DNA of 64,000 nt from Macrostomum lignano. Its lineage: Eukaryota. Of the stretch, positions 5,380 through 61,429 are shown piece by piece (position 1 is the stretch's first letter; each line of letters begins with the position of its first letter). The notes beneath the pieces were generated by a model. The model did no database searches and had not been told where the DNA came from. It saw only the letters and a list, made by a program, of their open reading frames with translations. Where the stretch lies: assembly GCA_002269645.1 (NCBI GenBank), contig NIVC01003474.1, positions 32,138 through 96,137 on the forward strand, given 5' to 3'. The translations under genes were made by a program, and so were the position numbers.

Positions 5380-6422
5380 ATGAACGAAACTAACTCTAGC
5401 AATCCTCAGGAGCCCTGGTTCCACGACCCCACCTGGAACTGGTTCATCTGGAACGTCTTCGTCTGGCTCTTTCCGCTGCTCTGTCTGGTCGGAGCGGTCG
5501 CGAACGCCGTTTCCTTCTACGTGATCGTGTCCAACAGGAAGTCGTTTCCCTACGTCACCAGGCAGTACCTCACCATCATCACTGCCAGTGACTTTCTCAT
5601 TCTCACGTGCAAGGTGAGCACTCACTACTTTGGCTACATGGCATTCTACGTGAAGACGAACAAGTGGACCTGGTTTACTAATCCGAGAGGCTGGGGAATC
5701 GCTTGGTGCATCGTGTACGACTTCTTTACTATGGGCTGGTGGGATCCCAATTCTTCCAACTGGGTCTCACGGTGGATCGGCTGATTGCGGTAGCGGCTCC
5801 GATGAAGGCCAAGGTGATTCTGACGCATCGGAGAAGCTGGGTAATGCTGAGCCTCATCACTGCAATGGCGCTGCTACTGCCTATCATGTTCGTCGCGAAT
5901 CGGACGTGGAACGACGCCACTAACAACTGTGGATTACGAAGTGTCAACTATCTAGTGAACGTGTACCAGCCGGCCGAGTTCTACTTCGGCAGGGTGTTCC
6001 TCGTTCTGGCGCTGACGTCGGGCACGGTGGTCATCTGCGTGCTGCTGGCCTGGAACAACAGGACCGCTCGGCGAATGCACTCCGACACGGCCGGCTCTGA
6101 GCAGCAGCAGCGGAGCAACCGAGAGCGACAGAGGTCGCTTGTTCGGATCAGCCTCATGCTGGTCTTCATCAACGTCTTCTTTCTGATCACGTCTCTGCCG
6201 TGGAGTGTAAGCGCCCTGCTAGAGCGCGAGATCATCGAGCGCATGGGAGAGAAGTTCAACTCTATAATATTATTTCACTTCAACTCGCTGCTGTACGTGA
6301 ACAATGCTCTGTCCTGGGTGACGTACTTGATGGGACGAAACTTCCGAGAGGCGTTTCGCCGAGTGTGGCTGTCCCTGTGCTGCTGCTGCTGCGCCTCCTG
6401 CCGTCGTCGAGTGTACACTTAG
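5380..6422 (+). pseudogene. Intronless class A GPCR paralogue 1, frameshifted
   Basis: ORFs 5380-5784 and 5703-6422 together match the intact paralogue at 25903. There is a 4-nt deletion at ~5728 (ttctttactatggg versus ttctttacatactatggg). 7TM pattern with LTVDRLIAV. An assembly error cannot be excluded. Confidence 0.85.
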
Positions 6423-9504: not shown

Positions 9505-10382
9505 GCGATTCTCATTCTCACGTGCAAGGTGAGCACTCATTACTTTGGCTACATGGCATTCTAGTTAAGACGAACAAGTGGACCTGGTTCACCAATCCGA
9601 GAGGTTGGATACTCGCTTGGTGCAATGTGTACGACTTCTTTACCTACTATGCTGTCATGGGTGTTCAGTTCTTCCAACTGGGTCTCACGGTACATCGGCT
9701 GATTGCGGTAGCGGCTCCGATGAAGGCCAAGGTGATCCTGACTCACCGCAGCAGCTGTCTGATGCTGAGCCTCATCACTGCAATGTCACTGCTACTGCCG
9801 ATCATGTTCGTCGCGAATCGGACTTGGAACGACGCCAAACACTCATGCGTTCTACGCAGTAAAGACTATCTAGTGAACGTGTACCAGCCGGCCGAGTTCT
9901 ACTTCGGCAGGGTGTTCGTCGTTCTGGCGCTGACGTCGGGCACGGTGGCCATCTGCGTGCTGCTGGCCTGGAACAACAGGACCGCTCGGCGAATGCACTC
10001 CGACACGACCGGCTCTGAGTAGCAGCAGCGAAGCAACCGAGAGCGACAGAGGTCGCTTGTTCGGATCAGCCTCATGCTGGTCTTCATCAACGTCTTCTTT
10101 CTGATCACGTCTTTGCCGTGGAGCATCGGCGCTCTGCTCGAAGTCCAAATTCTAAATAAGCTCGGACTGAACTTCTTCATATTGATGATGCGGCACTTCA
10201 ACTCGCTGCTGTACGCGAACAACGCCCTGTCCTGGGTGACGTACTTGATGGGACGGAACTTCCGAGAGGCGTTTCGCCGAGTGTGGCTGTCCCTGTGCTG
10301 CTGCTGCTGCGCCTCCTGCCGTCGTCGACTGAATGCTTCAAGCAGCAGCTCGACGGCGAGCACTCGACAGAGCGTACGTTAG
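9505..10382 (+). pseudogene. Class A GPCR paralogue 2, 5'-truncated pseudogene
   Basis: Homology to the 25903 gene begins only at TM2 (LILTCKVSTHY). There is an indel near 9547 and an in-frame TAG at 10020-10022 where the paralogues have CAG. Confidence 0.88.
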
Positions 10383-17850: not shown

Positions 17851-18960
17851 AATGTAAATGCCAAGCAACTCTTTTCGAATTGGATTGAGGCAAAAATCGT
17901 GACAGAATCTGGCAAAGGGAAATTTTTGTCTCTGACTTAGCTGAGCTGGTGGCTTGAAATGATCTGACGGAGTCGATGACTTGCAATAATTGCGCCTATT
18001 CTGACTAATGAAGCTTCTGTTGAATGTAACTATGCTGTTCCATCCCTGGAGTCACAAGGTAATCATTTTGGATCTTTTCTATAACGCCACCGGTCTAACA
18101 TTGAGGGTGTTTGAGTTGATAGAGCGGATCACAAATAGCAATCACAAATGTTTAAGAATCCTCTCGAATCCTTGATCAGGAGATTAAAAAGCTATTTTTT
18201 CTGGAAAGGTTTTAACGGGAAAATACATAAAGTACCTCCAGTTTTCCCTAGTCTTTTGGCTTATCTAGCTATTTTTATTGAAAACGAAACGCAAGCAGGT
18301 GTTTTACAAGCAAATCGACTGTTTGCTAAAGCTTATACAGTTACAGCACGCTGAAACATGAGCGCTAATTTTTTTTTTGGTGCACAAACAAGAAGCTGTC
18401 ACACCAGCCTTTATCATCGCTTTTATACTATGCATGAATGGCGTGAAGGTGTAAAAAAGCCAGATGGTAAGCTCACACGTGGCATTGGATTTGTACAGGC
18501 AAAGCTTAAACTGTGTGATGCCGAGTGCGTGACTATAACAGCTTAGTTGTTCAATCATTCTCTGGATCGCATAACACGTGTGTAGGAGACACAGTTTGTC
18601 GAAAAGCGAAAACGCAACACCGGGCTTCCGGCAAACACACGCGCGACACGCAATATTGTAAGGCAGCTGATACAATGGACACAACTGAGAATACAGAGAC
18701 ACGTGAATCGCATTAATAATTCAAGACCAGCCACTCGAAATTCTAAGCATCCAGCAGTGTCTTTCACAGGACAAGGACAAAACACCCGGTAAAATGAAGA
18801 AGATAAGTTTGCAGTCCACTGATCTGCCTTAATATTGCTCTTGCCGGCAGAGGCGTTACGTTGCATGGTTTCATGCCAGGCTCGTAGGTTTGTAAATAAA
18901 AAATGGTAAAACGATATCTACGTGTAAGGGGTCTCTCTGGTTGCTTTCACAAAGGCGAAA

Positions 18961-19230
18961 GAGGATGTGAACTTAAGCGCGATTTGGAAGCCGTGAGTCC
19001 AGCAACCAAACCGCTGCGAAATTCTCCCTATTCAGACCCAAAAAAGACAAGAAAAGCGTAATTGATCTTTCTTCCACCCCGGCCGCTTCTGCATGGGATA
19101 AATGGGGAAAAATGGGGATTTCATGTGAACTTAAGGCTCTGGAATGGAAGCGCTGGCCGATTGAGCCGGTTTCTCTATCGGATCTCTCTACTGGACCGAA
19201 AATGAGACAAGAATCGTTAAAAACCGCATC
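18961..19230 (+). repeat. Left TIR (270 bp)
   Basis: Reverse complement of 24050-24319 with a few mismatches in the inner part. Confidence 0.95.
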
Positions 19231-19826
19231 CCTTTTGTGTTGATGATTTTTACGGGCCATACTTGGGATTCTACATTAGTAGGCAAGATAGGCTGACAGA
19301 GATGCCGAGGGTGCTGTGCCTTTGTAATCATATGCCTAAATCTTATGGACCTAATATTGAAATCGTCATTAATCGAGGCAGCCTCATTATATCCCGCACC
19401 CATATGTGCACGTAATTCTTGGCTAGCCAATATCATTTTATAATGAGTGTTCTTCACTTTTTATTGTCCTGACACCTTGAACTTTTTTTTGCTGGGCAAC
19501 GAGCATTTAAGTATTGATTACGCAATCTGAATCCCGCACCCATATGTGCACTGCATGTACATTTGCATGGCCGACGCTAAGTGTGTTAATAATACTGCGA
19601 TTATCATTATAAAAGTGTTGAAGTATTTGGGCAGAAAGTTATTTTATATGTCAAAAAAGCTTGTCAGTAGCCTTCAAGACAGCATGCTGGACTCTAAAGT
19701 GCGTGACCATTAGCCATTTATATTTCGAAATCTATGCGTGCAATAATTTGGTGATGCACATTTTCTGATCGACTCTTGCGGCTCATTGTTACCTTCACTT
19801 TTCAATCTATGTAACTTAGCTTTGTC

Positions 19827-21582
19827 ATGTACTGGGCATGCCATCGATGTGGTAAACAGTTCAGCAATGAATTCAACCTCAAGAAACATCAGCAGACAAC
19901 CAGGTGTTCGGTTTTAAAGGAAGCGACTTTCTTTGGCTCCTGCAAGTCATTCGCAGATGTGAGAGGTGTGCTGCAGCGTTCTCCAACCAAGGTTAAAAAT
20001 TTTTTAAACCCGAATCTTTTTCCTGAACTTTTGGCTGACAAGCGCTTTAAGAAAGTCGTTGGAATGTCTCGAGAGAACTTTGACAGCTTCAAAAGCCTCA
20101 TCTCTGGCTCAGTACGCACTAGATTTCTAAGTCAAGAGAACAGAGTATTTCTTTACCTGAAAAAACTCCGCCCATGGCGTCAGCTTTGAAGCCATAGGAA
20201 ACGATTTCAACATTTCTGCGCGCCGCGCTTGTGAAGTCTTTTGGGAGGTGGCCAAGGATCACTACATCAACGACCCTTTTCAACCAAGGCTACTGTCATG
20301 TGCTCCGATTGAGCCAAGGAACTGGCAAAAGAAATTCAGCAACTGGCAACCGTCGTGGATATTTATGGCCGTTTTGTTTTCGAGGCACACATCTCGAACA
20401 TATCGAGTCCTTCTTCGCCTCAGCGATTTACCGAATGGAAACCCTTTTGGATTCCACGATGCCGGTCTAAGGAGGCTACATGCCTACTACTCCTCGTCCA
20501 AAGTGGGTAGCCGAACAGCTGGCTGTGACTGCCATGTAATGACAGTTCTTTTGGTCCTAGGTCATTATGCCTACGACCCAGATTCCTTTCGCCAACGATA
20601 TCCTGAGCGCCGCTTCGTTGATACACAGCTTCCTAAAAGCCTCAACGCTAATCTTTACACCTCTCTACCTGCTGAGGAAAATTTTAGAACAGAGCCTCGT
20701 CAAGAGCATCGTTTAGGAGCAAAGGATGCCAAACAAACATCATCAAGAAGTTCAGAGCCGCAGCCTCTCTGTGGACTAAGAAATAGCGGAGCAGACTGCT
20801 ATGCCTATTCTGCTATTCAGCTTCTTTACTGGATGGAGCAGAAGGGCCCATTAATGAGACGGGACATAGCTAGCGACTTGCAAAGATCTTTACAGCTACT
20901 TTTTCATCAAATGCTAGCTCTAAAAAATACTTCTGCCGCAGAAGTACAAGGAATTATCAGGCGCATCTGGCCCGGCAGATTTGCTGCTGGTGAGCAGCAC
21001 TGCTTTCTGGAGTTCTTGGAAGCCCTGCTTTCGACTCTCTCGGTTGCTAATGGCGCCCTTGCAGATGTTACTGCGCTCCGTAATTGTCGACGTTGTGGCT
21101 ACAGCGCAGCCTCGATTCAAACAGGAACAATCAGAGAACAAATTCTTTGCGTTCCTCTCTCAGAGTACAGCAGGGCTCCGATTAGCCTTTACGATCTTTT
21201 GGAAGAGCGACTGCGACCACGCATTTCGCAGTGCGGCCAATTAGGATGCGAAGGCTTGATTGAAGAGCAGATTATTCTGTCAGCGGCCAAGTTTGCAATT
21301 ACGAGTATTTACTTCAGCAGAACTCCAGAAAACTATAACACCGAAAAAATCAACACCCAAATACGGTACTCACCAAGATCTGAGAGTAATTCCGACTTCG
21401 GCAGTCCTGTGATAGTGATATGCCACTATGGCAGATCTCTCCATCGCGGGCACTACACTACCAGTGTTTGGCATGACAATGTATGGTGGTTGATTGGCGA
21501 TTCCAGAATTGTGCCCAACTGCAATCCGTTTCTCCGGGATGCACAAAATATCGTTGCTGTAGTTGTGCAAAAGAAAGACTGA
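19827..21582 (+). CDS. Transposon-encoded C2H2-ZnF / transposase-type HTH / SWIM-like / USP (peptidase C19)-like protein; about 584 aa if the +1 frameshift at ~20172 is removed
   Basis: CHRCGKQFSNEFNLKKH (zinc finger). FKKVVGMSRENF...VFLYLKKLR|HGVSFEAIGNDFNISARRACEVFWEV (HTH, continuous after skipping one C at 20172). FSRHTSRTY...GSRTAGCDCHVMTVLLVLGHY (SWIM-like, first Cys pair lost). Cys box GLRNSGADCYAYSAIQLL, QHCFLEFLEALL, CRRC...CGQLGC, His box VICHYGRSLHRGHY...WWLIGDSRI. Confidence 0.8.
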
Positions 21583-21982
21583 TCGTCCTTTCACCAGATC
21601 GTAGACCCGAGCTAGACAAGTTTTAGTTTTTCCTTGCGATGCACTCCAAATTTCAAAAGATTTATACCTACCTATGAACTTTTGCTTGCCACTACTTGCT
21701 CTGTTACATGTACATGCTTGTTAATATTTGCTCATGTACTTCTGCTTGAAAATATTTGCTCATGCACTTTTGGTTCCCCTTATTTGCAAATGCACTGTAT
21801 CATACATTACTAAAATCGTGCGTTTTAATATTTCATTAAACCTGTTCAGAAAAGTCTAATACAGATACTTAAAAAGATATTTTAAGTACAAAGATCGTTA
21901 AATACAATTACAGAAATTTTTAAAACATTCTTCAACATAAAGACTCAAGGCAGCTTTACCGGCCTGTTTCATCGGTCAGATT

Positions 21983-24187
21983 CTGATTGTCGGTCCAGTA
22001 GAGAGATCCGATAGAGAAACCGGCTCAATCGGCCACGCTTCCATTTCAGAGCCTTAAGTTCACATGAAATCCCCATTTTTCCCCATTTATCCGATTCAGG
22101 GAGACCAAATGATACAGAGATGCGGTTTTCGACGATTCCTGTCTCATTGTTGGTCCAGTAGAGAGATCCGATAGAGAAACCGGCTCAATCGGCCACTGCT
22201 TCCATTCCAGAGCCTTAAGTTCACATGAAATCCCCATTTTTCCCCATTTATCCCATTCAGGGAGACCAAATGATAGAGAGATGCGGTTTTCGACGATTCC
22301 TGTCTCATTGTTGGTCCAGTAGAGAGATCCGATAGAGAAACCGGCTCAATCGGCCACTGCTTCCATTCCAGAGCCTTAAGTTCACATGAAATCCCCATTT
22401 TTCCCCATTTATCCCATTCAGGGAGACCAAATGATAGAGAGATGCGGTTTTCGACGATTCTTGTCTCATTGTCGGTCCAGTAGAGAGATCCGATAGAGAA
22501 ACCGGCTCAATCGGCCACCGCTTCCATTTCAGAGCCTTAAGTTCACATGAAATCCCCATTTTTCCCCATTTATCCCATTCAGGGAGACCAAATGATAGAG
22601 AGATGCGGTTTTCGACGATTCTTGTCTCATTGTCGGTCCAGTAGAGAGATCCGATAGAGAAACCGGCTCAACCGGCCACTGCTTCCATTCAAGAGCCTTA
22701 AGTTCACATGAAATCCCCATTTTTCCCCATTTATCCGATTCAGGGAGACCAAATGATAGAGAGATGCGGTTTTCGACGATTCTTGTCTCATTGTCGGTCC
22801 AGTAGAGAGATCCGATAGAGAAACCGGCTCAATCGGCCACTGCTTCCATTCCAGAGCCTTAAGTTCACATGAAATCCCCATTTTTCCCCATTTATCCCAT
22901 TCAGGGAGACCAAATGATAGAGAGATGCGGTTTTCGACGATTCTTGTCTCATTGTCGGTCCAGTAGAGAGATCCGATAGAGAAACCGGCTCAATCGGCCA
23001 CGCTTCCATTTCAGAGCCTTAAGTTCACATGAAATCCCCATTTTTCCCCATTTATCCGATTCAGGGAGACCAAATGATAGAGAGATGCGGTTTTCGACGA
23101 TTCCTGTCTCATTGTTGGTCCAGTAGAGAGATCCGATAGAGAAACCGGCTCAATCGGCCACTGCTTCCATTCCAGAGCCTTAAGTTCACATGAAATCCCC
23201 ATTTTTCCCCATTTATCCCATTCAGGGAGACCAAATGATAGAGAGATGCGGTTTTTGACGATTCTTGTCTCATTGTCGGTCCAGTAGAGAGATCCGATAG
23301 AGAAACCGGCTCAATCGGCCACTGCTTCCATTCCAGAGCCTTAAGTTCACATGAAATCCCCATTTTTCCCCATTTATCCCATTCAGGGAGACCAAATGAT
23401 AGAGAGATGCGGTTTTCGACGATTCTTGTCTCATTGTCGGTCCAGTAGAGAGATCCGATAGAGAAACCGGCTCAATCGGCCACTGCTTCCATTCCAGAGC
23501 CTTAAGTTCACATGAAATCCCCATTTTTCCCCATTTATCCCATTCAGGGAGACCAAATAATAGAGAGATGCGGTTTTCGACGATTCTTGTCTCATTGTCG
23601 GTCCAGTAGAGAGATCCGATAGAGAAACCGGCTCAATCGGCCACCGCTTCCATTTCAGAGCCTTAAGTTCACATGAAATCCCCATTTTTCCCCATTTATC
23701 CCATTCAGGGAGACCAAATGATAGAGAGATGCGGTTTTCGACGATTCTTGTCTCATTGTCGGTCCAGTAGAGAGATCCGATAGAGAAACCGGCTCAATCG
23801 GCCACCGCTTCCATTTCAGAGCCTTAAGTTCACATGAAATCCCCATTTTTCCCCATTTATCCCATTCAGGGAGACCAAATGATAGAGAGATGCGGTTTTC
23901 GACGATTCTTGTCTCATTGTCGGTCCAGTAGAGAGATCCGATAGAGAAACCGGCTCAACCGGCCACTGCTTCCATTCAAGAGCCTTAAGTTCACATGAAA
24001 TCCCCATTTTTCCCCATTTATCCGATTCAGGGAGACCAAATGATAGAGAGATGCGGTTTTCGACGATTCTTGTCTCATTGTCGGTCCAGTAGAGAGATCC
24101 GATAGAGAAACCGGCTCAATCGGCCACTGCTTCCATTCCAGAGCCTTAAGTTCACATGAAATCCCCATTTTTCCCCATTTATCCCAT
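21983..24187 (-). repeat. Tandem array of about 14 x 161-bp units inside the right end of the transposon
   Basis: ggtccagtagagag recurs at 21992, 22152, 22313, 22474, 22635, 22796, 22957, 23117, 23278, 23439, 23600, 23761, 23922 and 24083. One partial inverted copy lies in the left TIR (~19095-19230). Confidence 0.97.
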
Positions 24188-24319
24188 GCAGAAGCGGCCG
24201 GGGTGGAAGAAAGATCAATTACGCTTTTCTTGTCTTTTTTGGGTCTGAATAGGGAGAATTTCGCAGCGGTTTGGTTGCTGGACTCACGGCTTCCAAATCG
24301 CGCTTAAGTTCACATCCTC
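24050..24319 (-). repeat. Right TIR (270 bp)
   Basis: Ends ...gcgcttaagttcacatcctc; reverse complement of 18961-19230. Confidence 0.95.
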
Positions 24320-25902
24320 TTTCACAACCGCTAATCACCTTCTTTCATAAACGCGAAATTTCATAACCGCGAAACTTCACAACCGCTAAATCACCTACTT
24401 TCATAAGCACTAAACTTCACAAACGCGAAACTTCACAACCGCTAAAAAGACTGCCGTATATGAAAGTAAGTGCAAAAATTTTAGCGGTTGTGAAATTTCA
24501 CGCTTGTGAAACCCACCCCTCTCTAGGACTTGACTTGAGACGGTGCTTCTGGTACGTGCGAGCGTAATCATATTGGCTTCTAGTTTTTAAAGCAACCACG
24601 AGATTCGAATAATGAATAAAAAAACTGAAACCCTGGTTCTCTCCATGGATCGATCCGCCCTTAGTCTTATTGGATTTTAAATTGACTTCTTCCCTTGTTG
24701 GATCCGGACTTCCACAAATAGGCGCTGAAGCGTGGCGACTGTCCATCATGAACTGCTGTGGGCTTCGTATCGGAGTTGCCTGGATGCTTGGATCTTGCGA
24801 CTAAATTATCTTAGGGAGCTCAGGGAGCGTAATCTGGGATCCAGGCTCACTCACCATGTCTCTGTCCTCAACGATATTGTATATGTACTTTCACCGCGCC
24901 ATCTGATGACTTTTTTCACCTCTGAAGTCAACCTCCGAACGTAGATACGATTGGTGCACGGAAAAGACCTTAAGTATGACCTTGCCCTCCCGTCTGCTGT
25001 GGAAGTCTTGCTGACGATACTGAGACTACTCTCATGATTCCTTTCCAGTACCAAACAGACATAATGCTGACTCCAGACATCGTCGAGTCTTGGGTGTTGG
25101 AATATTCTCTAGGCAATATTTATTTCTCTGAAAGCGTTCTCCAACGATACGATCAAGGGTGTGGTCATGCTAGCTAGGCCCTCTCGGTGAGTAGCCTAGG
25201 TGATTCACTCCAATCATTCATGCAGCAGCGAAAGAATGTCAATAGCAGATCAAAAGCAATATAGCAAAGAAGCAAGTGGGTTTATTCGAGATGCCTGGAT
25301 ATTGATATGTGTAATATATTTCGGCTAAAGTAAAAGGAACTATTGACAGAAGCATCATTGCTCCTCAGTTGCTTTACTGATTGATTAAGCATCTCATCGA
25401 TCAATACTTTCCCAAAGTTTCATCCAACAAGCAAGGAAAGTTTTCAGGGGGATTGATTGATTTTCAAATCTATGGAAATTTTTCCCAACGAAATGTCCAG
25501 TTGCTAAAACAATCCGATATTGGTGAACTGAAGCAAATCAATTGAAGGCTCAATTAGACATAAAACTGTAACAATGGCGTGTGAAAGATCAAATGAATGG
25601 CACATATCAGTTCTATCATAAAATCTTTCGGTGAAAATACTCAAAAGATTAAACGGATTCTAATCGGCCTTGCAAGCGTGAAGAGAGAACTGGATGCATC
25701 GTTAAAAAACCAAGAAAAAAGTTCGCGAAACCAATGGGAACACCTCACAGCTGCGGAATAGGCTATTCAGCACACACCTAACCTTGAGATTTTTGGGTAT
25801 AAATAGAAGCTCAAACCAATCATGCACTCGACTGCTGTATATCGAATTCATGCTTCATTCTTGCTGAAGCAACACTAAGATTGCTTTGTTCAAACCGAGC
25901 AG

Positions 25903-26979
25903 ATGAACGAAACAAACTCTAGCAATCCTCAGGAGCCCTGGTTCCACGACCCCAACTGGAACTGGTTCATCTGGAACGTCTTCGTCTGGCTTTTTCCGCT
26001 GCTCTGTCTGGTCGGAGCGGTCGCGAACGCCGTCTCCTTCTACGTGATCGTGTCCAACAGGAAGTCGTTTCCCTACGTCACCAGGCAGTACCTCACCATC
26101 ATCACTGCCAGTGACTTTCTCATTCTCACCTGCAAGGTGAGCACTCACTACTTTGGCTACATGGCATTCTACGTGAAGACGAACAAGTGGACCTGGTTCA
26201 CTAATCCGAGAGGTTGGGGAATCGCTTGGTGCATTGTGTACGACTTCTTTACATACTATGGGCTGGTAGGATCTCAGTTTTTTCAACTGGGTCTCACGGT
26301 AGATCGGCTGATTGCGGTAGCGGCTCCGATGAAGGCCAAGGTGATTCTGACACATCGGAGAAGCTGGGTAATGCTGAGCCTCATCACTGCAATGGCACTG
26401 CTACTGCCGATCATGTTCGTCGCGAATAGAACGTGGAACGACGCCACTAACAACTGTGGATTACGAAGTGTCAACTATCTAGTGAACGTGTACCAGCCGG
26501 CCGAGTTCTACTTTGGCAGGGTGTTCCTCGTTCTGGCGCTGACGTCGGGCACGGTGGTCATCTGCGTGCTGCTGGCCTGGAACAACAGGACCGCTCGGCG
26601 AATGCACTCCGACACGGCCGGCTCTGAGCAGCAGCAGCGGAGCAACCGAGAGCGACAGAGGTCGCTTGTTCGGATCAGCCTCATGCTGGTCTTCATCAAC
26701 GTCTTCTTTCTGATCACGTCTCTGCCGTGGAGCATCGGCGCTCTACTAGAAGACCAGCTGGTTACTGAACTTGGAGTCAACCCTTTCATATTGATGATGC
26801 GGCACTTCAACTCGCTGCTGTACGCGAACAACGCTCTGTCCTGGGTGACGTACTTGATGGGACGGAACTTCCGAGAGGCGTTTCGCCGAGTGTGGCTGTC
26901 CCTGTGCTGCTGCTGCTGCGCCTCCTGCCGTCGTCGACTGGACGCTTCGGGCAGCAGCTCGACGGCGAGCACTCGATAG
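25903..26979 (+). CDS. Intronless class A (rhodopsin-like) GPCR, 358 aa, paralogue 3 (intact)
   Basis: Seven hydrophobic segments, GAVAN in TM1, ASDF in TM2, LTVDRLIAV in TM3, SLPW in TM6, NNALSWVTY in TM7, C-terminal poly-Cys. Peptide-receptor/Srw-like appearance is inference. Confidence 0.92.
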   Translation: MNETNSSNPQEPWFHDPNWNWFIWNVFVWLFPLLCLVGAVANAVSFYVIVSNRKSFPYVTRQYLTIITASDFLILTCKVSTHYFGYMAFYVKTNKWTWFTNPRGWGIAWCIVYDFFTYYGLVGSQFFQLGLTVDRLIAVAAPMKAKVILTHRRSWVMLSLITAMALLLPIMFVANRTWNDATNNCGLRSVNYLVNVYQPAEFYFGRVFLVLALTSGTVVICVLLAWNNRTARRMHSDTAGSEQQQRSNRERQRSLVRISLMLVFINVFFLITSLPWSIGALLEDQLVTELGVNPFILMMRHFNSLLYANNALSWVTYLMGRNFREAFRRVWLSLCCCCCASCRRRLDASGSSSTASTR

Positions 26980-29762: not shown

Positions 29763-30878
29763 ATGAATAACACAACAGCTGCTGGCCTAGAGAGCGAAAG
29801 AAATACAACCAGCGACTTTGGCGATCCTATATGGAACCAGTTTGCCTGGGCCGTCTTCATATGGCTGTTTCCGCCGCTCTGTCTGGTTGGAACAATCGCC
29901 AACGCCGTCTCCTTCTACGTGATCGTGTCCAACAGGAAGTCGTTTCCCTATGTCACCCGGCAGTACCTCAGCATCATCACTGCCAGCGACTTTCTCATAC
30001 TCACGTGCAAAGCGAGTACACATTATCTGATCTATATCAAAAGCGTATCGGACTCCAACACTATCTTTCTGTCACCGAGAGCCTGGGGACTCACCTGGTG
30101 CATTGTTTACGACTTCTTTACCTACTATGCGCTGGTGGGATCCCAGTTCTTCCAGCTGGGCCTCACGGTGGATCGCCTAATAGCCGTAGCCGCTCCGATG
30201 AAGGCCAAGGTGATTCTGACGCATCGAAGAAGCTGGGTGCTGTTAGGCCTCATCACTACGATGTCGCTGCTACTGCCAGTCATGTTCGTCGCGAACCGAA
30301 CGTGGCATAACGGCAATTGTGTGTTCCGCAGCCAACAGTACTTCGAAATTGTGTACAAGTCGGTAGAGTTCTACTTTGGCAGGGTGTTCCTGGTCTCCGC
30401 TTTAACCTCTGGCACAGTGGCCATCTGCCTGCTGCTGGCCTGGAACAACAGGACCGCTAGGAGGTTGGACATCGAGGTGAATGCCACTGAATCGCAACAG
30501 CTGCGTCACAAATATCTGGTCCGCATCAGCCTGATGCTGGTCTTTATAAATTTAATCTTTCTGGCAACAGCCCTGCCATGGACCATTTCAATTCTAACGG
30601 AGGACCAGTTGACAATAGTAATGGGCCAGGATTTTTACTATCGAATGCTCCGCCATTTCAACTCGATCCTGTACGTAAACAACGCAGTAAGTTGGATTGC
30701 CTATTTCATGGGCCGCAATTTTCGCGAGGCCTTCTGCCGCTCTTTGCGAACAGAGCAGCTGCGCCGCCGCTGGCAACAAAGGAGCGGTCAAAGGCCGTCC
30801 GGCCTGGCGCCGCAAGCAAGGGCCGCCGAGATCGAGGACTTGCAGGTGGAAACGACGCGGTTTTTAGCGGAACCATAG
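29763..30878 (+). CDS. Intronless class A GPCR, 371 aa, paralogue 4 (intact, more divergent)
   Basis: Same 7TM motifs (LTVDRLIAVAAPMKAK, NNAVSWIAY). N-terminal N-glycosylation sequons NNT and NTT. Confidence 0.92.
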   Translation: MNNTTAAGLESERNTTSDFGDPIWNQFAWAVFIWLFPPLCLVGTIANAVSFYVIVSNRKSFPYVTRQYLSIITASDFLILTCKASTHYLIYIKSVSDSNTIFLSPRAWGLTWCIVYDFFTYYALVGSQFFQLGLTVDRLIAVAAPMKAKVILTHRRSWVLLGLITTMSLLLPVMFVANRTWHNGNCVFRSQQYFEIVYKSVEFYFGRVFLVSALTSGTVAICLLLAWNNRTARRLDIEVNATESQQLRHKYLVRISLMLVFINLIFLATALPWTISILTEDQLTIVMGQDFYYRMLRHFNSILYVNNAVSWIAYFMGRNFREAFCRSLRTEQLRRRWQQRSGQRPSGLAPQARAAEIEDLQVETTRFLAEP

Positions 30879-50683: not shown

Positions 50684-53600
50684 TCACTCCGCCCCAGACT
50701 GTCTGCCACTCAGGCGAGCCCGCATCACCGCCATGCAGCCGTAGTGGGTGACCTGGCGCGACGGGAACCTGGCAAAGGCGCTGGCCCCGATCCGGTTCTG
50801 GCAGACGCTGCACCGGGTGCCCTCCTCGATGGCCACCCGGCCGGAGCGGACCCGGGCGAAGGCGGCCGCAGTCTGCAGCCGCTCGGCGTGGTACAGACCG
50901 CGGCGGGACTGCAGCAGGCGCTTCTCGGCCTCGAGCCGTTGCAGCGATGTCAGCAGATAGTCGGACAGGTCGGCCAGCGGGGTGGCCGGCGGCAGCAGCG
51001 GCAGGACTCGGACAGGCGGTATCTGGCCCGGCCGGCGTTTCAATAATTGTAGCGCGCGCTGCGTCATTGGCGCCGGAGCGCGCGGCGCCTACAAAAGTAG
51101 TGCTTTATTTATAACAAACCAAGGCAGACTGTTTTAGGATTTCACTTTGAAAGATGAGCAATACGGGGGCTGATTTCATAAAAAAAGCTACAAGTGACGA
51201 GTGAAAAGTCGACAAATGACAAGTGTCAAGCGTCAACGATTTTGGTTTCATAAACATGGGTCCTTACTCGTGTTAAAAAAAACTCAATTTTATGTCTATG
51301 GTTGAGACACCATATGAAATCAATCCAGAGTTGAGCCCACAGACCACAATTTAAGGATCTGTGTTTTATACAGACTTGCTTTAAAGACGGCCTCTGCGTT
51401 CTTCTTGGACTTCAATCACAGCTTTAAACCACTTTAAAGCTCACTTTCAGGGAGGTTATTGACATAGATTTTATTTTGCGGGATTTAATCGATCACTTTC
51501 CCGGACACATTGCAAGGATTATTGTATGTATCTAAATAAGCGAGCTTCTCTCTTCTCTTCCTTCGTGACTCGTGACTCTCTTCCACACCCCTAGCAGGGG
51601 CTTCGCCCCCACACCCCTAGCAGGGGCTTCGCCCCCACACCCCTAGCAGGGGCTTCGCCCCCACACCCCTAGCAGGGGCTTCGCCCCCACACCCCTAGCA
51701 GGGGCTTTGCCCCCACACCCCCCACACCCCCATCCCCAACTTCAACCATAGACATACAAGTATGGCTCCGGGATTTATCGGAATACATCCCGCAAAATTA
51801 AAGTACGAGCTAGTTTAAATAAGATATTCTATGAGTTTTTCGGTCGGTATTTCACTTAAATCCCATACCGACCTTAAACCCATAGAAAATATTATACTTA
51901 ATAAAGCTAAAAGTGTCACAGCGACTGTCAAAAACACAAGACAAGAGGAAGTATTTTCACACAGAAGCATCCAGCTTAGTGCATGTCTATGGACGAAACC
52001 CCCGAAGAAGCGATTGTAATTTGTCAAATTTCGCTTGTCACTTGTCACTTGTAATTTGTCCGACAAGTGCTTTATGAATAGCCCTACTCACATGCAATTT
52101 ATAGGCCTCGGCGGGCAGGGGCGCCAGCAGCGCTTTGATCAGCTGACCGTAGACCTCGCCCTGAAGGATGGCTAGCGAAGAATCGGCCGCATCGCCAGTT
52201 TCGGCAGTTGGCTGGCTGAGAATCTCTTCAGCCAGAGACTCAGCCTTCTCCGGCGACTCCAGATACTGGGCCAGAATAGTGAATGCCAGCTCGTACTGGC
52301 CCAGCCTGCTCAGCAGCAGGGCTCGCTCCTCCAGCATGTCGTTGTTAGGATAGCGGGCCAGCAGCTCCTGGGCGTTGTAGTGCCGGGAGCGGCGCAGGAA
52401 GGCCAGCAGGCGGGACCGGGCGCCGGCCACGGCTAAAGGCCCGGTCTGCTGCTCAAGCCTGAGCCGGTACTGGTTAGCCAGTCGGGTGTGCAGCGATTCG
52501 CTGGTGTCAGGCGGCTTACAGTGCAGTACGCAGTGCTCAAGATAGTCTGTGAGCAGTTGAGGAGCGCTAGACTCCAGGAAATTGGCCACCTCTATGCGTG
52601 GCAGCGCATTGTCACCGTCTGCTTGGCTCTCTGTGAAGATTCGCAAGCCCTCCTTGGGGTCGCGCTCGATTATCCACCGACTGTAGCGGAATATGAGATC
52701 CTGGTAGGGCACGCCCAGTTCCTGCACGATGCAACAGTTTTGTGGGATGCAGGGTTAGGGGGTGCGGTGTCAGGGTAGGGGGCTGCAGTGTCAGGATAGG
52801 GGCTGCAGTGTCAGGATAGGCGGCTGCAGTGTCAGGATAGGGGGCTGCAGTGTCAGGGTAGGGGGCTGCAGTGTCAGGATAGGTGGCTGCAGTGTCAGGA
52901 TAGGCGGCTGCAGTGACAGGATAGGGGGCTGCAGTGTCAGGGTAGGGGGCTGCAGTGTCAGGATAGGGGCTGCAGTGTCAGGATAGGCGGCTGCAGTGTC
53001 AGGATAGGGGGCTGCAGTGACAGGATAGGGGGCTGCAGTGACAGGATAGGGGGCTGCAGTGTCAGGATAGGGGCTGCAGTGTCAGGATAGGGGGCTGCAG
53101 TGACAGGATAGGGGGCTGCAGTGACAGGATAGGGGGCTGCAGTGTCAGGATAGGGGGCTGCAGTGACAGGATAGGGGGCTGCAGTGTCAGGATAGGGGCT
53201 GCAGTGTCAGGATAGGGGGCTGCAGCGACAGGATAGGGGGCTGCAGTGTCAGGATGGGGGCTGCAGTGTCAGGATAGGGAGCTGCAGTGACAGGATAGGG
53301 GGCTGCAGTGTCAGGATAGGGGGCTGCAGTGTCAGGATAGGGAGCTGCAGTGACAGGATAGGGCGGCTGCAGTGTCAGGATAGGGGCTGCAGTGTCAGGA
53401 TAGGGAGCTGCAGTAACAGGATAGGGCGGCTGCAGTGTCAGGATAGGGGGCTGCAGTGACAGGAAGTGGCTGCAGTGACAGGATAGGGGGCTGCAGTGTC
53501 AGGATAGGGAGCTGCAGCGACAGGATAGGGGGCTGCAGTTTCAGGATGGGGGCTGCAGTGTCAGGATAGGGAGCTGCAGTGACAGGATAGGGGGCTGCAG

Positions 53601-56600
53601 TGTCAGGATAGGGGGCTGCAGTGTCAGGATAGGGAGCTGCAGTGTCAGGATAGGGGGCTGCAGTGTCAGGATAGGGGGCTGCAGTGTCAGGATAGGGAGC
53701 TGCAGTAACAGGATAGGGGGCTGCAGTGTCAGGATAGGGGGCTGCAGTGTCAGGATAGGGAGCTGCAGTAACAGGATAGGGCGGCTGCAGTGTCAGGATA
53801 GGGCGGCTGCAGTGTCAGGATAGGGGGCTGCAGTGTCAGGATAGGGGGCTGCAGTGTCAGGATAGGGGGCTGCAGTGACAGGATAGGGGGCTGCAGTGTC
53901 AGGATAGGGCGGCTGCAGTGTCAGGATAGGGGGCTGCAGTGTCAGGATAGGGGGCTGCAGTGACAGGATAGGGGGCTGCAGTGACAGGATAGGGGGCTGC
54001 AGTGACAGGATAGGGGCTGCAGTGTCAGGATAGGGGGCTGCAGTGACAGGATAGGGGGCTGCAGTGACAGGATAGGGGGCTGCAGTGACAGGATAGGGGG
54101 CTGCAGTGACAGGATAGGGGGCTGCAGTAACAGGATAGGGGGCTGCAGTGACAGGATAGGGGGCTGCAGTGACAGGATAGGGGGCTGCAGTGTCAGGATA
54201 GGGAGCTGCAGTGTCAGGATAGGGGGCTGCAGTGACAGGATAGGGGGCTGCAGTGACAGGATAGGGGGCTGCAGTGACAGGATAGGTTAATGCGGTAATG
54301 TTAGACTAAGGTTTCAAGATAGAGTTCTACAACAGTCAAACAGAAAAGCAAATCCGATTTACCTGCAGGTACTGCACGCTGTCCTCAATATTGGAGATCT
54401 GAGAGCCGGGTTGCTGATAGTGCTCCATGAGCAGTTTCAGACTGGACTCGTGATCATTATTGTTTTTATAGAGCAGCAGCAGGCTTGGCCACATCCGCTT
54501 CTGTTTCAGACAGGCTTCCGCCTCGCGCAGGTGACAATAGTTGGTGGTGCGAAGCAGGGAAGGCACCAGAGCGGGATTGCTCTCCAGGTAGCATTTCAGC
54601 AGTGAAGTGTCAACTAGCTGACGGAGCTTCTCTAAGTCAGCGGTGATTGGCTGTGGTGGAAGGCATCAGGTTGAAGCCGTTTGCACTTTCCAGTTCGCTT
54701 CGAAGCCAGACTCCAGATTGCCTACTCTCCTTTTAGCCACTGCTATCTACTCTCCCCCAGCCACTGCTATCTACTATTGACCAGCCACTGCTATCTACTA
54801 TTGACCAGCCACTGCTATCTAATCTCCCCCCAGCCGCTGCTATCTACTCTCGACCAGCCACTGCTATCTAATCTCCCCCCAGCCGCTGCTATCTACTCTT
54901 GACCAGCCGCTGCTATCTACTCTCGACCAGCCACTGCTGTCTAATCTCCCCCAGCCGCTGCTATCTAATCTCCCCCCAGCCGCTGCTATCTAATCTCCCC
55001 CTTAGCCACTGCTATCTACTCCCCCTTAGCCACTGCTATCTACTCCCCCTTAGCCACTGCTATCTACTCCCCCTTAGCCACTGCTATCTACTCCCCCTTA
55101 GCCACTGCTATCTACTCCCCCTTAGCCACTGCTATTTACTCCCCCTTAGCCACTGCTATCTACTCCCCCTTAGCCACTGCTATCTACTCCCCCTTAGCCA
55201 CTGCTATCTACTCCCCCTTAGCCACTGCTATCTACTCCCCCTTAGCCACTGCTATTTACTCCCCCTTAGCCACTGCTGTCTACTCTCCCCCCTTAGCCAC
55301 TGCTGTCTACCCTCCCCCCTTAGCCACTGCTGTCTACTCTCCCCCTTAGCCACTGCTATCTTCTCCCCCTTAGCCACTGCTGTCTACTCTCCCCCCTTAG
55401 CCACTGCTGTCTACCCTCCCCCCTTAGCCACTGCTGTCTACTCTTCTCTCTTAGCCTTTGTAGCCCCTGAGAATCTCACACCTTAGAATCTTACTCATTA
55501 GAAAATCCGGCCCCTGAGAATCTCACCCCTGATTATTTCACTCGTGAGAATCTCAGCCCTGAGACTCTCTTCTCCCTAAGAATCTCTCGAAGGGGGTAGC
55601 CTAGTGGTCTCTGATGTGCCAGCGGCCCAGGCTCGATTCCAAGTGCATTCACGTTAATTTGGGGCTAAATTGGAATCTCAGCTTGGCTCTGCTCGTGCAA
55701 TTGCCGCCCTTCAGGGCCAACCCTTAAGGCACAGTAAAGTGTACATGCCTAATGATAAAGTCAGGGCCGCTGTGCACTCCTGTGTGAGAGTGTGCCTGTG
55801 AGAATGACTGCGTACGTATCCGTGCGCTTGTGTGCCTGCTCAGGGGAGTCGGCGGAACGGGCAGCAATGCCTCTCGCCGGTTGTGTGACAATGTCGCCGC
55901 CCACGCCCCCGGGACCCTCCCCAGGCGACCAGCAGCTCACCTGGTATTTGTCAACAGTGTAGAACTGAATAGGAGGCGGCGGCGGCACCTTCTGAGCGAT
56001 CTGAGCTAGCAGCTTCTTGCGCACCGAAGACAAATACTTGGCCAAAGCGAAGTAGCTCTCCAACAGGTCCTGGCCGCTGAACTCAGGCACCCGGCCGGGA
56101 AAGCTGACCCGATCCCGGAACTCCCTCGGCGCGATAGGGTACATGGCAACCACATTGGCCGGATCAATGCTCAGCAGCTCTAACAGGTCCAGCGACTCAG
56201 CGAACTGGCGCTGGCAGAACAGGTTGAAGGCGTAGTGGCACTTCACCAGCGAGACGTCAATGTCCCGCAGCTCGTCCGCCCTGTCCGGATCCGACTGGCC
56301 GATCTCGTGCAGCCGTAGGGCCAGCTCAAAATCGCGACGCTGTATGAGAACTTTTATCTGGGCTGACAGCGGCCGCGGGTGCAGGCAGTAGACTGACTTG
56401 GCAGAGGCAGCGAACAACACGCCGCGGTGCTGGCTGACGCTGCGCAGGCTCTGCACGGGGGTGTGACTCATTAAGGCTAGGGATGTGACTCATTAAGGCT
56501 AGGGATGTGACTCATTAAGGCTAGGGATGTGACTCATTAGAGCTGGGGATGTGACTCATTAGAGCTGGGGATGTGACTCATTAGAGCTAAAGGTGTGACT

Positions 56601-59600
56601 CATTAGAGCTAGGGTGTGACTTATTTGGGATTATTCATCAGGGATTAGAGCTAAGGGTGACTCATTGGAGCTAAGGGTGACTCATTGGAGCTAAGGGTGA
56701 CTCATTGGAGCTAGAGGTGACTTATTGAAGCTAAGGGTGACTCATTGGAGCTAAGGGTGACTCATTGGAGCTAAGGGTGACTCATTGGAGCTAAGGGTGA
56801 CTCATTGGAGCTAAGGGTGACTCATTGGAGCTAGAGGTGACTCATTGGAGCTAAGGGTGACCTGTTGAAGCTAAGGGTGACTCATTGGAGCTAAGGGTGA
56901 CTCATTGGAGCTAAGGGTGACTCATTGGAGCTAAGGGTGACTCATTGGAGCTAGAGGTGACTTATTGGAGCTAAGAGTGACTTATTGAAGCTAAGGGTGA
57001 CTCATTGGAGCTAAGGGTGACTCATTAGAGCTAAGGGTGACTCATTGGAGCTAGAGGTGACCTGTTGAAGCTAAGGGTGACTCATTGGAGCTAAGGGTGA
57101 CTCATTGGAGCTAAGGGTGACTCATTGGAGCTAAGGGTGACTCATTGGAGCTAAGGGTGACTCATTGGAGCTAAGGGTGACTCATTGGAGCTAAGGGTGA
57201 CTCATTAGAGCTAGAGGTGACTCATTGGAGCTAAGGGTGACCTGTTGAAGCTAAGGGTGACTCATTGGAGCTAAGGGTGACTCATTGGAGCTAAGGGTGA
57301 CTCATTGGAGCTAAGGGTGACTCATTGGAGCTAGAGGTGACTCATTGGAGCTAAGGGTGACCTGTTGAAGCTAAGGGTGACTCATTGGAGCTAAGGGTGA
57401 CTCATTGGAGCTAAGGGTGACTCATTGGAGCTAAGGGTGACTCATTGGAGCTAGAGGTGACTCATTGGAGCTAAGGGTGACCTGTTGAAGCTAAGGGTGA
57501 CTCATTGGAGCTAAGGGTGACTCATTGGAGCTAAGGGTGACTTATTGAAGCTAAGGGTGACTCATTGGAGCTAAGGTTGACTCATTGGAGCTAAAGGTGA
57601 CTCATTGGAGCTAAGGGTGACTCATTGGAGCTAGAGGTGACTCATTGGAGCTAAGGGTGACCTGTTGAAGCTAAGGGTGACTCATTGGAGCTAAGGGTGA
57701 CTCATTGGAGCTAAGGGTGACTTATTGGAGCTATGGGTGACTCATTGGAGCTAAGGGTGACTCATTGGAGCTAGAGGTGAGTTATTGGATCTAGGCATGA
57801 CTGGAACTCAAGGCGAGAGTGGTGGAAGAGGCGATTATCAAGGAGCTGACCTTGCAAGAAAGTGCCTGACGCGTACACAGGCACTTTCTCTGCGATGTCA
57901 GGCACGCACATACCGACTCTTTGGGGGCTAACTCATTAAGTAATCTCAAACTCACCGGAATGTCCAAATTCTGTATCAGCGAAGTCCGCTGATCAACAGT
58001 TCGAACTTCAACAAAATCGGCACAGATGCCAATCAGAAACGGGGCCAAATACTGCAGCAGCAGAGGCTCCTTGGACCACTTGACCATCAACGGCCCGTCG
58101 TTGCTTTTCTGACCGCGTCGCCAGCGGCCCTTCTCGTTGACAAACATAGTCTTGGAGTCCTTGGAGCAGAGCGCCAGAGTGTTGCGCTCAACTGGCGCCA
58201 TGACCGGGCCCGTGGCCGGTGAGAAAGGAAACAGCTCGAGGATTTCTCCGTCATCAACGCGAATTCGAAAGTAGTCGGTTTTTAATGCGACGCAAAGCGC
58301 TGTTGGGCCAATCCAGCTGACGGCTCTGGCCGCGGCGGGCAGGGCGAGTTCCTGGCGGAGCTCGGCGAACTGCCAGGCGCCAGGAGGCCAGTGGTAGAGC
58401 AGCAGCCGCTGCTTGACGTGAACGCACAGGCGCAAGTTGGATTGTCTGCCGCTTCCGCCTCCGGGATCTGCCGGGGTCTGGTGACAGCAGGCGAACAGGG
58501 AAGCGCCTCGGGTTCTGTCCAGCACGCTGAGAGCCTTCAACGTGTCCAGATTGTGCACCGAGACTGTGCCATCTGACAGGCTAATTAGCAAGCTGAGCGG
58601 TACCACAGCTTCCAGCTGCTGGATTGGCCGCTTGGAGAATGATTTGTGCGACTTCAGCAGCTGGATGGAGGGGCATTTGTCCAGGCCCGAGATGGAGTAG
58701 CTCAGCAGGTGGCCCTGTTCATGGCAGTGGGAGGAGCTGAATTATTAATGAGTCTGAGGCTCATGGGGAATTTCTCAGACTGTGAAGACCATACTCATAG
58801 GGAATTTCTCAGATTGCAAAGACAGAAAGGCTCATAGGGAATTGCCCAGGTTGTAAAGACACAAAGGCTTATGGGGAATCGTTCTGATTGTAAAGACACA
58901 AAGGCTTATGGGGAATTGTCCAGGTTGTAAAGACACAAAGGCTCATGGGGAATTGCCCAGGTTGTAAAGACACAAAGGCTTATGGGGAATTGTCCAGGTT
59001 GCAAAGACACAAAGGCTCATGGGGAATTGCCCAGGTTGTAAAGACACAAAGGCTTATGGGGAATTGCCCAGGTTGTAAAGACACAAAGGCTCATGGGGAA
59101 TTGCCCAGGTTGTAAAGACACAAAGGCTCATGGGGAATTGCCCAGGTTGTAAAGACACAAAGGCTTATGGGGAATTGTTCTGATTGTAAAGACACAAAGG
59201 CTTATGGGGAATTGCCCAGGTTGTAAAGACACAAAGGCTCATGGGGAATTGCCCAGGTTGTAAAGACACAAAGGCTTATGGGGAATTGTTCTGATTGTAA
59301 AGACACAAAGGCTTATGGGGAATTGCCCAGGTTGTAAAGACACAAAGGCTTATGGGGAATTGCCCAGGTTGTAAAGACACAAAGGCTCATGGGGAATTGC
59401 CCAGGTTGTAAAGACACAAAGGCTTATGGGGAATTGCCCAGGTTGTAAAGACACAAAGGCTCATGGGGAATTGCCCAGGTTGTAAAGACACAAAGGCTCA
59501 TGGGAATTGCCCAGGTTGTAAAGACACAAAGGCTCATGGGGAATTGCCCAGGTTGTAAAGACACAAAGGCTTATGGGGAATTGTCCAGGTTGTAAAGACA

Positions 59601-60633: not shown

Positions 60634-61429
60634 CACATGGCTCTCTGATGAGGCGAGCCGCCAGCATGAACATTTGCGAACAAAATGAAATGTTTTCGTT
60701 TTTTTACAAATGTTAATTTGACGCGGAATTTTAATGATAGACGACAAAGGAAGAATCAAAATAGTAATGTTCATGATAACTTTTCTGAATAAATTTATTA
60801 ATATTAAAACATTTATGAAGCAAGTAAAACAAGATTTAAGCACTTTACGAGAATTTGGTATAGATTAACTATTAGCAATCACATTTATGCGTAAATTAAA
60901 GCAAAACTATACGCACGAAGTCTACGTACGGCATCAAGTGTGAAAGACCGCAATGCAATGCAAAAAAACAAAAATAGATAATGAATAACAATGTACGCTG
61001 CATTTAACAAGCAGATAAAGGAAACCCATCACCCATGTGCACTGATTAAGCATTTGCAAACCAATTAACCGACAATGTATCTAGAAATATTGATACGAGT
61101 GTCGTATATTATGAATTATGGCTACTTGTGTTTACAATGACTGTTAAACTGTTGAAAAGATGAAATATTGCAATAATTAGACAGCTCATCATTAGTATTC
61201 TTCTGATGGATCATCTGCGCCTGTTAAAACACTAGTCACCGAAATACTTGTACGAGCTAAGGCTAATTTAAAGATTGAAAACATTAACACACAGAACTTC
61301 TTAATCAACACACGTAACTCAAAGACACGAACTTTTAGCAACTAAAGTACACGGTTACAAATCACTTAACTAAAGATTCTACACTATAGAATCTCAACCC
61401 TAGTAGCTAAACTACACGGCTGGAAGCGA

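Follow-up and report, generated by a model that had tools for sequence, protein, structure and literature searches.

Analysis of a 64,000-nt stretch of the Macrostomum lignano genome (assembly GCA_002269645.1, contig NIVC01003474.1, positions 32,138-96,137 of the forward strand; hereafter the window) revealed a DNA transposon at positions 18961-24319 whose coding region ends in a ubiquitin-specific protease (USP, peptidase C19) domain. The element is likely a young non-autonomous copy of a Spy-like transposon of the PHIS superfamily, whose autonomous form would carry a C2HC zinc finger, a helix-turn-helix (HTH), a DDE catalytic domain, a SWIM-related domain, a linker and the USP domain within one transposase. 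An internal deletion of about 1.1 kb would have removed the DDE core and brought the DNA-binding N-terminus into one frame with the C-terminal domain and the USP, and a later 1-nt insertion would have broken this frame after codon 115. Having no catalytic core and a broken frame, the copy cannot move itself; since its terminal inverted repeats (TIRs) are intact, it could be mobilised in trans by a full-length relative.

The only long open reading frames (ORFs) of the element are 19827-20189 (frame 0) and 20161/20248-21582 (frame +1; features of the element are on the plus strand unless stated otherwise). The coding region 19827-21582 and its frameshift-corrected product of 584 amino acids (aa) agree with an earlier description made from the letters alone (the sequence-only reading), which had regarded it as the sole long coding region of 18961-24319. 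The first part of the reading frame (19827-20171), comprising the start codon, the finger and the first half of the HTH, is 60% identical to residues 7-118 of the closest relative, P0001. It ends at a +1 frameshift caused by a surplus C within the CCC run at 20169-20171, which displaces the frame between KKLR and HGVSFEAIG at a point where P0001 is uninterrupted; the second part runs from 20173 to the stop codon ending at 21582. Once the extra C is removed, KKLR-HGVSFEAIG aligns without gaps with KKLRQAASFEAIG of P0001. As assembled, translation ends at codon 120. The intact transposase ORF of an autonomous transposon is thus lacking, the DDE core being deleted and the frame shifted.

Relatives were collected by scanning 1.84 billion representative proteins exhaustively with HMMER, which gave 59 matches at E <= 0.001. 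Word-indexed protein searches with the window protein, P0001, and a mid-domain plus USP profile yielded only P0001, P0053 and P0094, since the family is too sparse and divergent for the index, and scans of the JGI metagenomes with the window protein and with another relative, P0007, gave no match. P0001 (560 aa, from a JGI metagenome) shares 61% identity with window residues 5-162 over its own residues 7-164, and then continues as a DDE transposase. Its contig, L001, contains 1137 nt of DDE core (1392-2528) with no counterpart in the window: by tblastn, window residues 5-162 correspond to L001 918-1391, and residues 154-310 to L001 2529-3018, the latter at 53-55% identity. Because the two parts of the window protein match the sequence on either side of this core, the protein is read as a transposase with its catalytic core deleted. 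The approximate junction lies at 20308-20313, about 1.14 kb equivalent to L001 1392-2528 having been removed, and no DDE remnant was found in the window copy in any frame. The sequence-only reading had supposed a dedicated DNA-binding protein serving a separate partner transposase, which is contradicted by the origin of the N-terminus in a DDE transposase such as P0001 and of the next 150 aa in post-DDE sequence.

The extent of the parent protein can be followed through further relatives. In P0008, the DDE tail and the following domain lie within one ORF. The stop codon at the end of P0001 is peculiar to this copy, being TGA in L001 vs TGG in the 94%-identical copy L002 and W in P0008. L002 and the end of L001 overlap with 94-95% nucleotide identity, except for a 137-nt deletion, and L002 continues into a USP (P0002) that is 43% identical to the window USP over 341 residues. 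The closest family thus appears to encode one protein of about 985 aa with a C2HC finger, HTH, DDE, C-terminal domain, linker and USP; in its host, the family has multiple copies and is in part degenerate. The damage in L001 consists of the TGG-to-TGA stop (2580-2582) and a frameshift (2741-2746), and that in L002 of the 137-nt deletion, which falls in the SWIM-related domain (166-167) and leaves the USP ORF open. The KP derivative of the P element is an internally deleted, non-autonomous form that has lost the catalytic part and kept the DNA-binding N-terminus and the element ends. The window copy resembles it in all these respects, and differs from it in retaining an enzymatic C-terminal domain, the USP.

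The N-terminal finger (19839-19907, CHRC...H...C) has the pattern C-x2-C-x12-H-x5-C, kept in relatives, and is on this ground a C2HC finger. The zf-C2H2 Pfam profile scores 20 bits on the corrected protein, under its cut-off of 25.2; a zinc finger had been correctly recognised from the letters, only its type (C2H2) had not. The transposase-type HTH (20127-20241, residues 101-139) is HTH_Tnp_4-like and spans the frameshift; its Pfam score of 21.8 bits is under the cut-off of 27, and is similarly weak in P0001 (21.3 bits) and P0009 (18.7 bits).

The conserved C-terminal transposase domain, related to SWIM, was delimited from the alignment of relatives at 20311-20664 (residues 163-280). It comprises about 125 residues and is found in about 30 of the 59 HMMER matches. 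Most of these domains have the Cys/His pattern C-x4-C-x8-C-C-x-H, and the classical C-x-C-x9-C-x-H occurs in P0010 and P0018. In the window, the SWIM pattern CxCxnCxH (PF04434) is replaced by a degenerate YSSS...CDCH (CDCH at 20524-20535), the segment YSSSKVGSRTAGCDCH corresponding to CCSCKIGSRLAGCCSH of P0010. The first Cys pair is gone and the second motif is changed in both the window and L001, which makes metal binding in this lineage doubtful. SWIM is the most frequent Pfam match of the domain but a weak one (3 of 24 relatives, best E 0.0014), and it gives no match on the window protein. The SWIM-like segment proposed earlier is therefore a conserved domain in relatives whose metal-binding motif has degenerated in the window; among the profile matches predicted for the corrected protein, UCH exceeds its cut-off, HTH_Tnp_4 remains below it and SWIM is absent. 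An AlphaFold2 model of the domain (pLDDT 82, pTM 0.68) has three strands followed by a long helix starting at CDCH, and a fold search of the PDB with this model found nothing significant (best E about 1). Residues 185-260 were considered as a remnant of the N-terminal DDE part, and this was rejected since they align to the conserved post-DDE domain of all relatives. A low-complexity linker, unconserved in alignments, follows at 20665-20769.

The USP domain occupies 20770-21579, as judged from Pfam, alignment, a structural model and fold search. The UCH profile (PF00443) scores 43.7 bits on the domain alone and 37.6 bits within the whole protein, above the curated cut-off of 23.9. The catalytic residues are encoded exactly at the codons named in the sequence-only reading: Cys by TGC at 20797-20799 within GLRNSGADCY, with the oxyanion Asn five residues upstream, His by CAC at 21451-21453 within GHY, and Asp by GAT at 21499-21501 within WWLIGDS. 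The Cys pairs of the zinc-ribbon or finger subdomain are likewise present with all four Cys (CRRC at 21085-21096 and CGQLGC at 21232-21249), and the USP alignment places a QxxC-EFL box at 20992-21015. Across 16 transposon-linked USPs, the Cys, the His and the Gly preceding the His are invariant or nearly so. A profile built from these 16 related segments matches the PDB structures of USP15, USP46/12, USP2, USP36 and USP21 with E about 1e-30. Searched as a single sequence, the window USP has a best PDB match of E 0.001, being compact and divergent from canonical USPs. The AlphaFold2 model of residues 308-585 (mean pLDDT 86.2, pTM 0.87) has the thumb-palm-fingers fold; in a Foldseek comparison with the PDB, the best 50 matches were all USP catalytic domains, USP18, 35, 46, 21 and 2 among them, with probability 1.0 and TM 0.65-0.74. 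The USP/C19 assignment made from the letters is thus upheld, and the window protein is predicted to have an intact catalytic triad on a USP fold.

The association of a USP with this type of transposase is not limited to the window. P0007 (1048 aa) and P0036 (955 aa) each have one continuous ORF for the HTH, the DDE and the C-terminal domain together with a UCH domain that is significant in Pfam. P0007 stands for a cluster of 20 sequences (>=90% identity) drawn from several ENA assemblies, two Tara samples among them, and P0036 comes from a Logan assembly. Other relatives (P0004, P0005, P0006, P0009, P0010 and P0035) have N-terminal finger(s), HTH, DDE and C-terminal domain without a USP, and end shortly past the C-terminal domain, usually with an acidic tail. 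As USP-less relatives stop at this point, the USP is seen as an extra module that part of the family carries at a single fixed site, the extreme C-terminus.

A further group of USP proteins (P0054, P0012, P0027, P0034, P0053, P0050 and P0046) ends in ...NFTIDILFFK and has the same Q-x-C-x-x-EFL box as the window USP. Ahead of its USP, P0054 (768 aa) carries a CSC...CAH motif of the classical SWIM type, and a phmmer search with the P0001 DDE core detected no DDE domain in it; the group may represent a further derivative of the family or a branch of it that was domesticated. In the P0007 family (L003:1942-2010; L005, L006 and L008), an ORF of 580-592 aa with two C2H2 fingers and an acidic GDPN-repeat region precedes the 1048-aa transposase-USP ORF and shares its frame. 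A single in-frame TAG parts the two in each of the four contigs covering the site, the next ATG being 63 nt away. The TAG could reflect readthrough, a short intron or a nonsense mutation common by descent; read jointly, the ORFs would give a protein of about 1630 aa. Tandem repeats of about 100 bp, variable in copy number and more numerous in L008, follow the ORF (L003:5900-6400; L006, L007 and L008), and parallel the 161-bp subterminal array of the window element described below. The P0007-family contigs stop inside the element or within subterminal repeats, so the element ends are not reached. Among full-length USP-bearing elements, L004 has only a 5-nt GAGGT/ACCTC match with TTTAA/TTAAA flanks, too short to be trusted as ends.

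The ends of the window element are sharply defined. Inverted-repeat arms of 277 nt, 98% complementary, lie at 18957-19233 and 24047-24323; once the host bases AAA (18958-18960) and TTT (24320-24322), the two halves of the target site, are trimmed, TIRs of 273 nt remain at 18961-19233 and 24047-24319 (minus strand), as located by inverted-repeat search and comparison of the ends. The element begins with 5'-GAGGATGTGAAC and finishes with GTTCACATCCTC-3', and its outermost 80 nt are identical at both ends. When the flanks are joined, TTTCACAAAGGCGAAA and TTTCACAACCGCTAAT make up two units, placed head to tail, of a 16-nt repeat of the host, which runs on at 24320-24447. It follows that AAA and TTT are host bases and that nothing was duplicated. 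The left terminus of L001, GAGGATGTCAAC, also follows AAA and is common to the window element. The 98% identity of the TIRs indicates a young element, and no further copy of it was found within the window. The host repeat (TTTCAYAAnCGCGAAA) occupies 24320-24511 and 18945-18960 around the insertion, with inverted copies of the unit at 24479-24511, and some unit junctions make AAATTT. A 161-bp subterminal unit forms a tandem array at 21982-24191 (13.7 copies, 97% matches) that extends into the right TIR. The inner 145 nt of each arm are one unit of this repeat, present once and inverted in the left TIR (19089-19233) vs 13.7 times on the right, as a subterminal repeat expanding to a satellite-like array. 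The numerous minus-strand ORFs of 63-84 aa at 21982-24191 are artefacts of this repeat.

The family was placed in the IS5-like PHIS superfamily (PIF/Harbinger, ISL2EU and Spy) on the basis of its DDE_Tnp_4 match, its sub-threshold HTH_Tnp_4 match and its conserved motifs D-H/A-T-Y, D-K/R-G-Y and V-E-x-x-F-x-x-x-K/R-Q. The DDE_Tnp_4 profile scores 32.4 bits on P0006 (cut-off 24.8) and weakly, 15.8 bits, on P0001; the IS5-like DDE domain is present in relatives and absent from the window copy. Members of the Spy group have TIRs, a single transposase ORF and an N-terminal HTH (Han et al. 2014, PMC4122938; cgSpy and relatives, PMC11304231), as does the window element if its weakly matching HTH is counted, a single ORF being represented by the one ORF of the window and by the finger-to-USP ORF of relatives. 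Spy elements also insert exactly between AAA and TTT without target site duplication (PMC4122938), as seen here for one insertion whose empty site was rebuilt from the 16-nt host repeat. The 5'-GAG/GGR termini of the family are similar to those of cvSpy (GAGCC after AAA) and of crSpy and ldSpy (GGAC after AAA), and GGGCC after AAA has also been published. Known Spy hosts include cnidarians and bivalves (PMC4122938; PMC11304231). The family differs from Spy in protein size, about 985-1075 aa (about 1630 aa with the upstream ORF of the P0007 family) vs about 700 aa, as well as in its N-terminal C2HC finger, its SWIM-related C-terminal domain and, in a subset, the USP. The PHIS/Spy assignment already suggested from the letters is retained for the TIRs, the insertion between AAA and TTT and the motifs, the family departing from published Spy in protein size and D-D-E spacing; the element is called Spy-like here on account of its target site, termini and motifs.

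Several observations weigh against the interpretation of the window element as a deleted Spy-like transposon from a USP-bearing family. As to simple membership of Spy, the catalytic spacing, with residues assigned by motif in eight family members, would be D(92-94)D(74-102)E, and the published Spy spacing of D(79-80)D(44-62)E (PMC4122938) does not occur in these eight. As to the USP, identity to the window domain is only 19-22% for the USPs of P0007 and P0036, which could be independent acquisitions instead of descendants of one fusion. The deletion was deduced by comparison with a metagenomic relative only 55-61% identical, not with a full-length copy from the same genome, and the complete architecture of the closest family was pieced together from the overlapping contigs L001 and L002, each slightly damaged. 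Finally, a frameshift in a short homopolymer could be an assembly error, in which case the copy would encode an intact protein with DNA-binding and USP parts.

The last point bears on an explanation that we regard as unlikely, namely that the DDE-less protein is functional, either, as proposed in the sequence-only reading, as a TIR-targeted deubiquitinase or regulator that binds the element ends by way of its finger and HTH and removes ubiquitin marks or stabilises a partner transposase, or as a KP-like repressor occupying transposase sites. The deletion preserves the reading frame, neither the DNA-binding N-terminus nor the catalytic triad is damaged, and the many subterminal repeat copies in the TIRs are possible binding sites. 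An in-frame junction has, however, a one-in-three chance of arising. The only break in the frame is the 1-nt change in the CCC run, past which 474 codons are free of stops; this openness is uninformative on selection, because absence of stops is expected without it in an element whose TIRs are 98% identical. Moreover, the DDE-less frame as assembled stops at codon 120, every readable relative has, or had, a DDE core, and neither a second copy nor an orthologue with the same junction was found in the window, by word-indexed protein search or in the JGI metagenome scan. A purpose-built TIR-targeted deubiquitinase is conceivable only if the frameshift is an assembly artefact, and even so its chances appear slim.

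Another explanation is that this particular copy took up part of a host USP gene through transduplication, and that its USP is now decaying. Capture of host fragments by transposons does occur, and the divergence of the compact window USP from canonical USPs would agree with it. Against it stands the identical position and order of C-terminal domain, linker and USP in L002/P0002, P0003, P0007, P0036 and P0054, from different samples. In addition, the nearest USP relatives among the representative proteins scanned include transposon-linked ones, one of them a PIF1-helicase fusion, and not ordinary cellular USPs. Codon alignments of the window with L001 and L002 gave a proportion of synonymous differences (pS) of 0.71-0.94, which is saturated, in every module, and non-synonymous proportions (pN) of 0.22-0.37. 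Over the 275 codons of the USP, which has 42% amino-acid identity to its nearest relative, pN is 0.369 and pS 0.758, with differences at codon positions 1/2/3 of 0.43/0.31/0.64; only pN and pS are given here, since saturated synonymous sites preclude a dN/dS ratio. Neutrality would bring pN near pS, so a pN of half the saturated pS indicates protein-level constraint on the USP for most of the separation of the lineages, and this constraint resembles that on the rest of the transposase. Together with the conservation of catalytic and zinc-ribbon residues, it rules out a copy-specific decaying capture, the outcome named in the sequence-only reading as fatal to it, and the capture explanation is very improbable. 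Least credible of all is a host gene domesticated from a transposase, for although repeated domestication of PIF/Harbinger transposases is described (for example, PMC9710019 and PMC4890758), the element has intact 273-nt TIRs of 98% identity, an exact insertion between AAA and TTT in a host microsatellite and a frameshifted ORF without introns, and its relatives L001 and L002 are multi-copy and degenerate.

Transposon-borne proteases of the ubiquitin/SUMO systems, UCH included, are already known, and what appears to be new, judging from domain content, is a USP on a cut-and-paste PHIS transposase. Ulp1/C48 proteases are carried by Mutator-like elements and by Zisupton, which pairs a SWIM finger with a protease. 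Ulp1 and OTU proteases occur in Ginger2/TDD elements (PMC2836005). All of these resemble the present family in having a cysteine isopeptidase of the ubiquitin/SUMO system on a DDE transposon, and differ from it in the protease, which is CE/C48 or OTU vs the CA/C19 USP of the family, and in the superfamily of the transposase. OTU and VTD deubiquitinases are found in Helentrons (PMC9741609), and Pfam UCH is among the domains enriched in subgroups c and d of HLE2 Helitron-like elements (PMC11417382). As in the present family, Helentron/HLE2 elements have a papain-fold deubiquitinase beside or fused to a transposition enzyme; they are rolling-circle elements with RepHel and without TIRs or DDE, whereas the USP of the family is fused to a DDE cut-and-paste transposase. 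Neither Spy paper (PMC4122938, PMC11304231) mentions a protease or ubiquitin-related domain, and no report of a USP in a PHIS or other DDE cut-and-paste transposase was found in the literature, the Spy/PHIS papers included, a search whose scope did not extend to Repbase or Dfam. The novelty suspected from the letters therefore appears to hold for PHIS elements, but not for transposons at large, UCH being reported in Helentron-type elements (PMC11417382).

PHIS-linked USPs have in common a small derived feature of their box. They have Q-x-C-x-x-E-F-L, whereas canonical USPs and P0019, P0025, P0038, P0052, P0055 and P0059 have Q-Q-D-x-x-E-F, the P0038-like group of helicase-linked and unassigned proteins thus showing the canonical QQD-x-EFL form. 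Of these six, only P0038, a PIF1-helicase plus UCH protein among the nearer relatives of the window USP, has a tool-based Helitron link. On visual inspection alone, an endonuclease-like GDFN motif precedes the USP in P0025 and P0059, and the C-terminus of P0055 carries a helicase-like motif. There are hints in these sequences that the USPs of different transposon classes may be related.

In the full-length protein, the USP would be an active isopeptidase acting in cis with the transposase. Its likeliest role, for which belief and doubt are perhaps evenly balanced, would be to deubiquitinate the transposase or its cofactors and thereby spare them proteasomal turnover. This proposal is drawn by analogy with Helentrons, in which VTD and OTU are proposed to shield proteins needed for transposition from proteasomal degradation (PMC9741609); protection from degradation is the only mechanistic proposal for transposon deubiquitinases found in the literature. 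As the main, less likely alternative, the USP may remove ubiquitin from chromatin, either H2A/H2B silencing marks or double-strand-break signalling at the excision site, which comes close to the anti-silencing idea put forward in the sequence-only reading and is speculation. The USP of the window copy is most probably no more than a remnant. A bolder and tentative picture, rather unlikely as a whole, would be a Spy-like DDE lineage in which an integral, selectively maintained active USP is needed for efficient transposition, shielding the transposase or erasing chromatin ubiquitin at the element or the excision break, and in which DDE-less in-frame derivatives are expressed as TIR-targeted deubiquitinases that modulate the activity of the family.

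Proteases of the ubiquitin/SUMO systems (Ulp1, OTU, VTD and, in Helentrons, UCH) have been picked up repeatedly by transposons, and nobody has shown the reason. Spy transposases function in two-plasmid assays in human cells (PMC11304231), and a USP-bearing cut-and-paste transposase offers a tractable test case for deubiquitination in transposase stability, excision, integration and silencing. Through this family, the PHIS/Spy group also comes to include far larger multi-domain transposases, whose conserved C-terminal domain lacks a structural match in the PDB. The window copy, a dead derivative, matters mainly as a pointer to this USP-bearing family.

The gene content of the window is metazoan and includes a cluster of intronless rhodopsin-type G-protein-coupled receptor (GPCR) genes, a MAM33-family gene, an ornithine carbamoyltransferase exon and a CNH/clathrin-repeat (Vps39-like) gene. 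The transposon sits between two GPCR genes of the tandem rhodopsin-family (7tm_1) cluster (5703-6422, 9522-10022, 25903-26979 and 29763-30878), of which two are full length (358 and 371 aa) and two are partial copies almost identical to the gene at 25.9 kb. The right half of the window (33400-64000) is unusually rich in minisatellites of 19-48 bp, many of them located between exons of the Vps39-like and ornithine carbamoyltransferase genes; examples are units of 21 bp x 73 at 52756-54286, 20 bp x 63 at 56529-57793, 37 bp x 46 at 58757-60446 and 33 bp x 40 at 61397-62704. Several of the minisatellites also give rise to long spurious ORFs at 45.4-46.9 kb, 50.2-50.7 kb and 54.9-55.5 kb.

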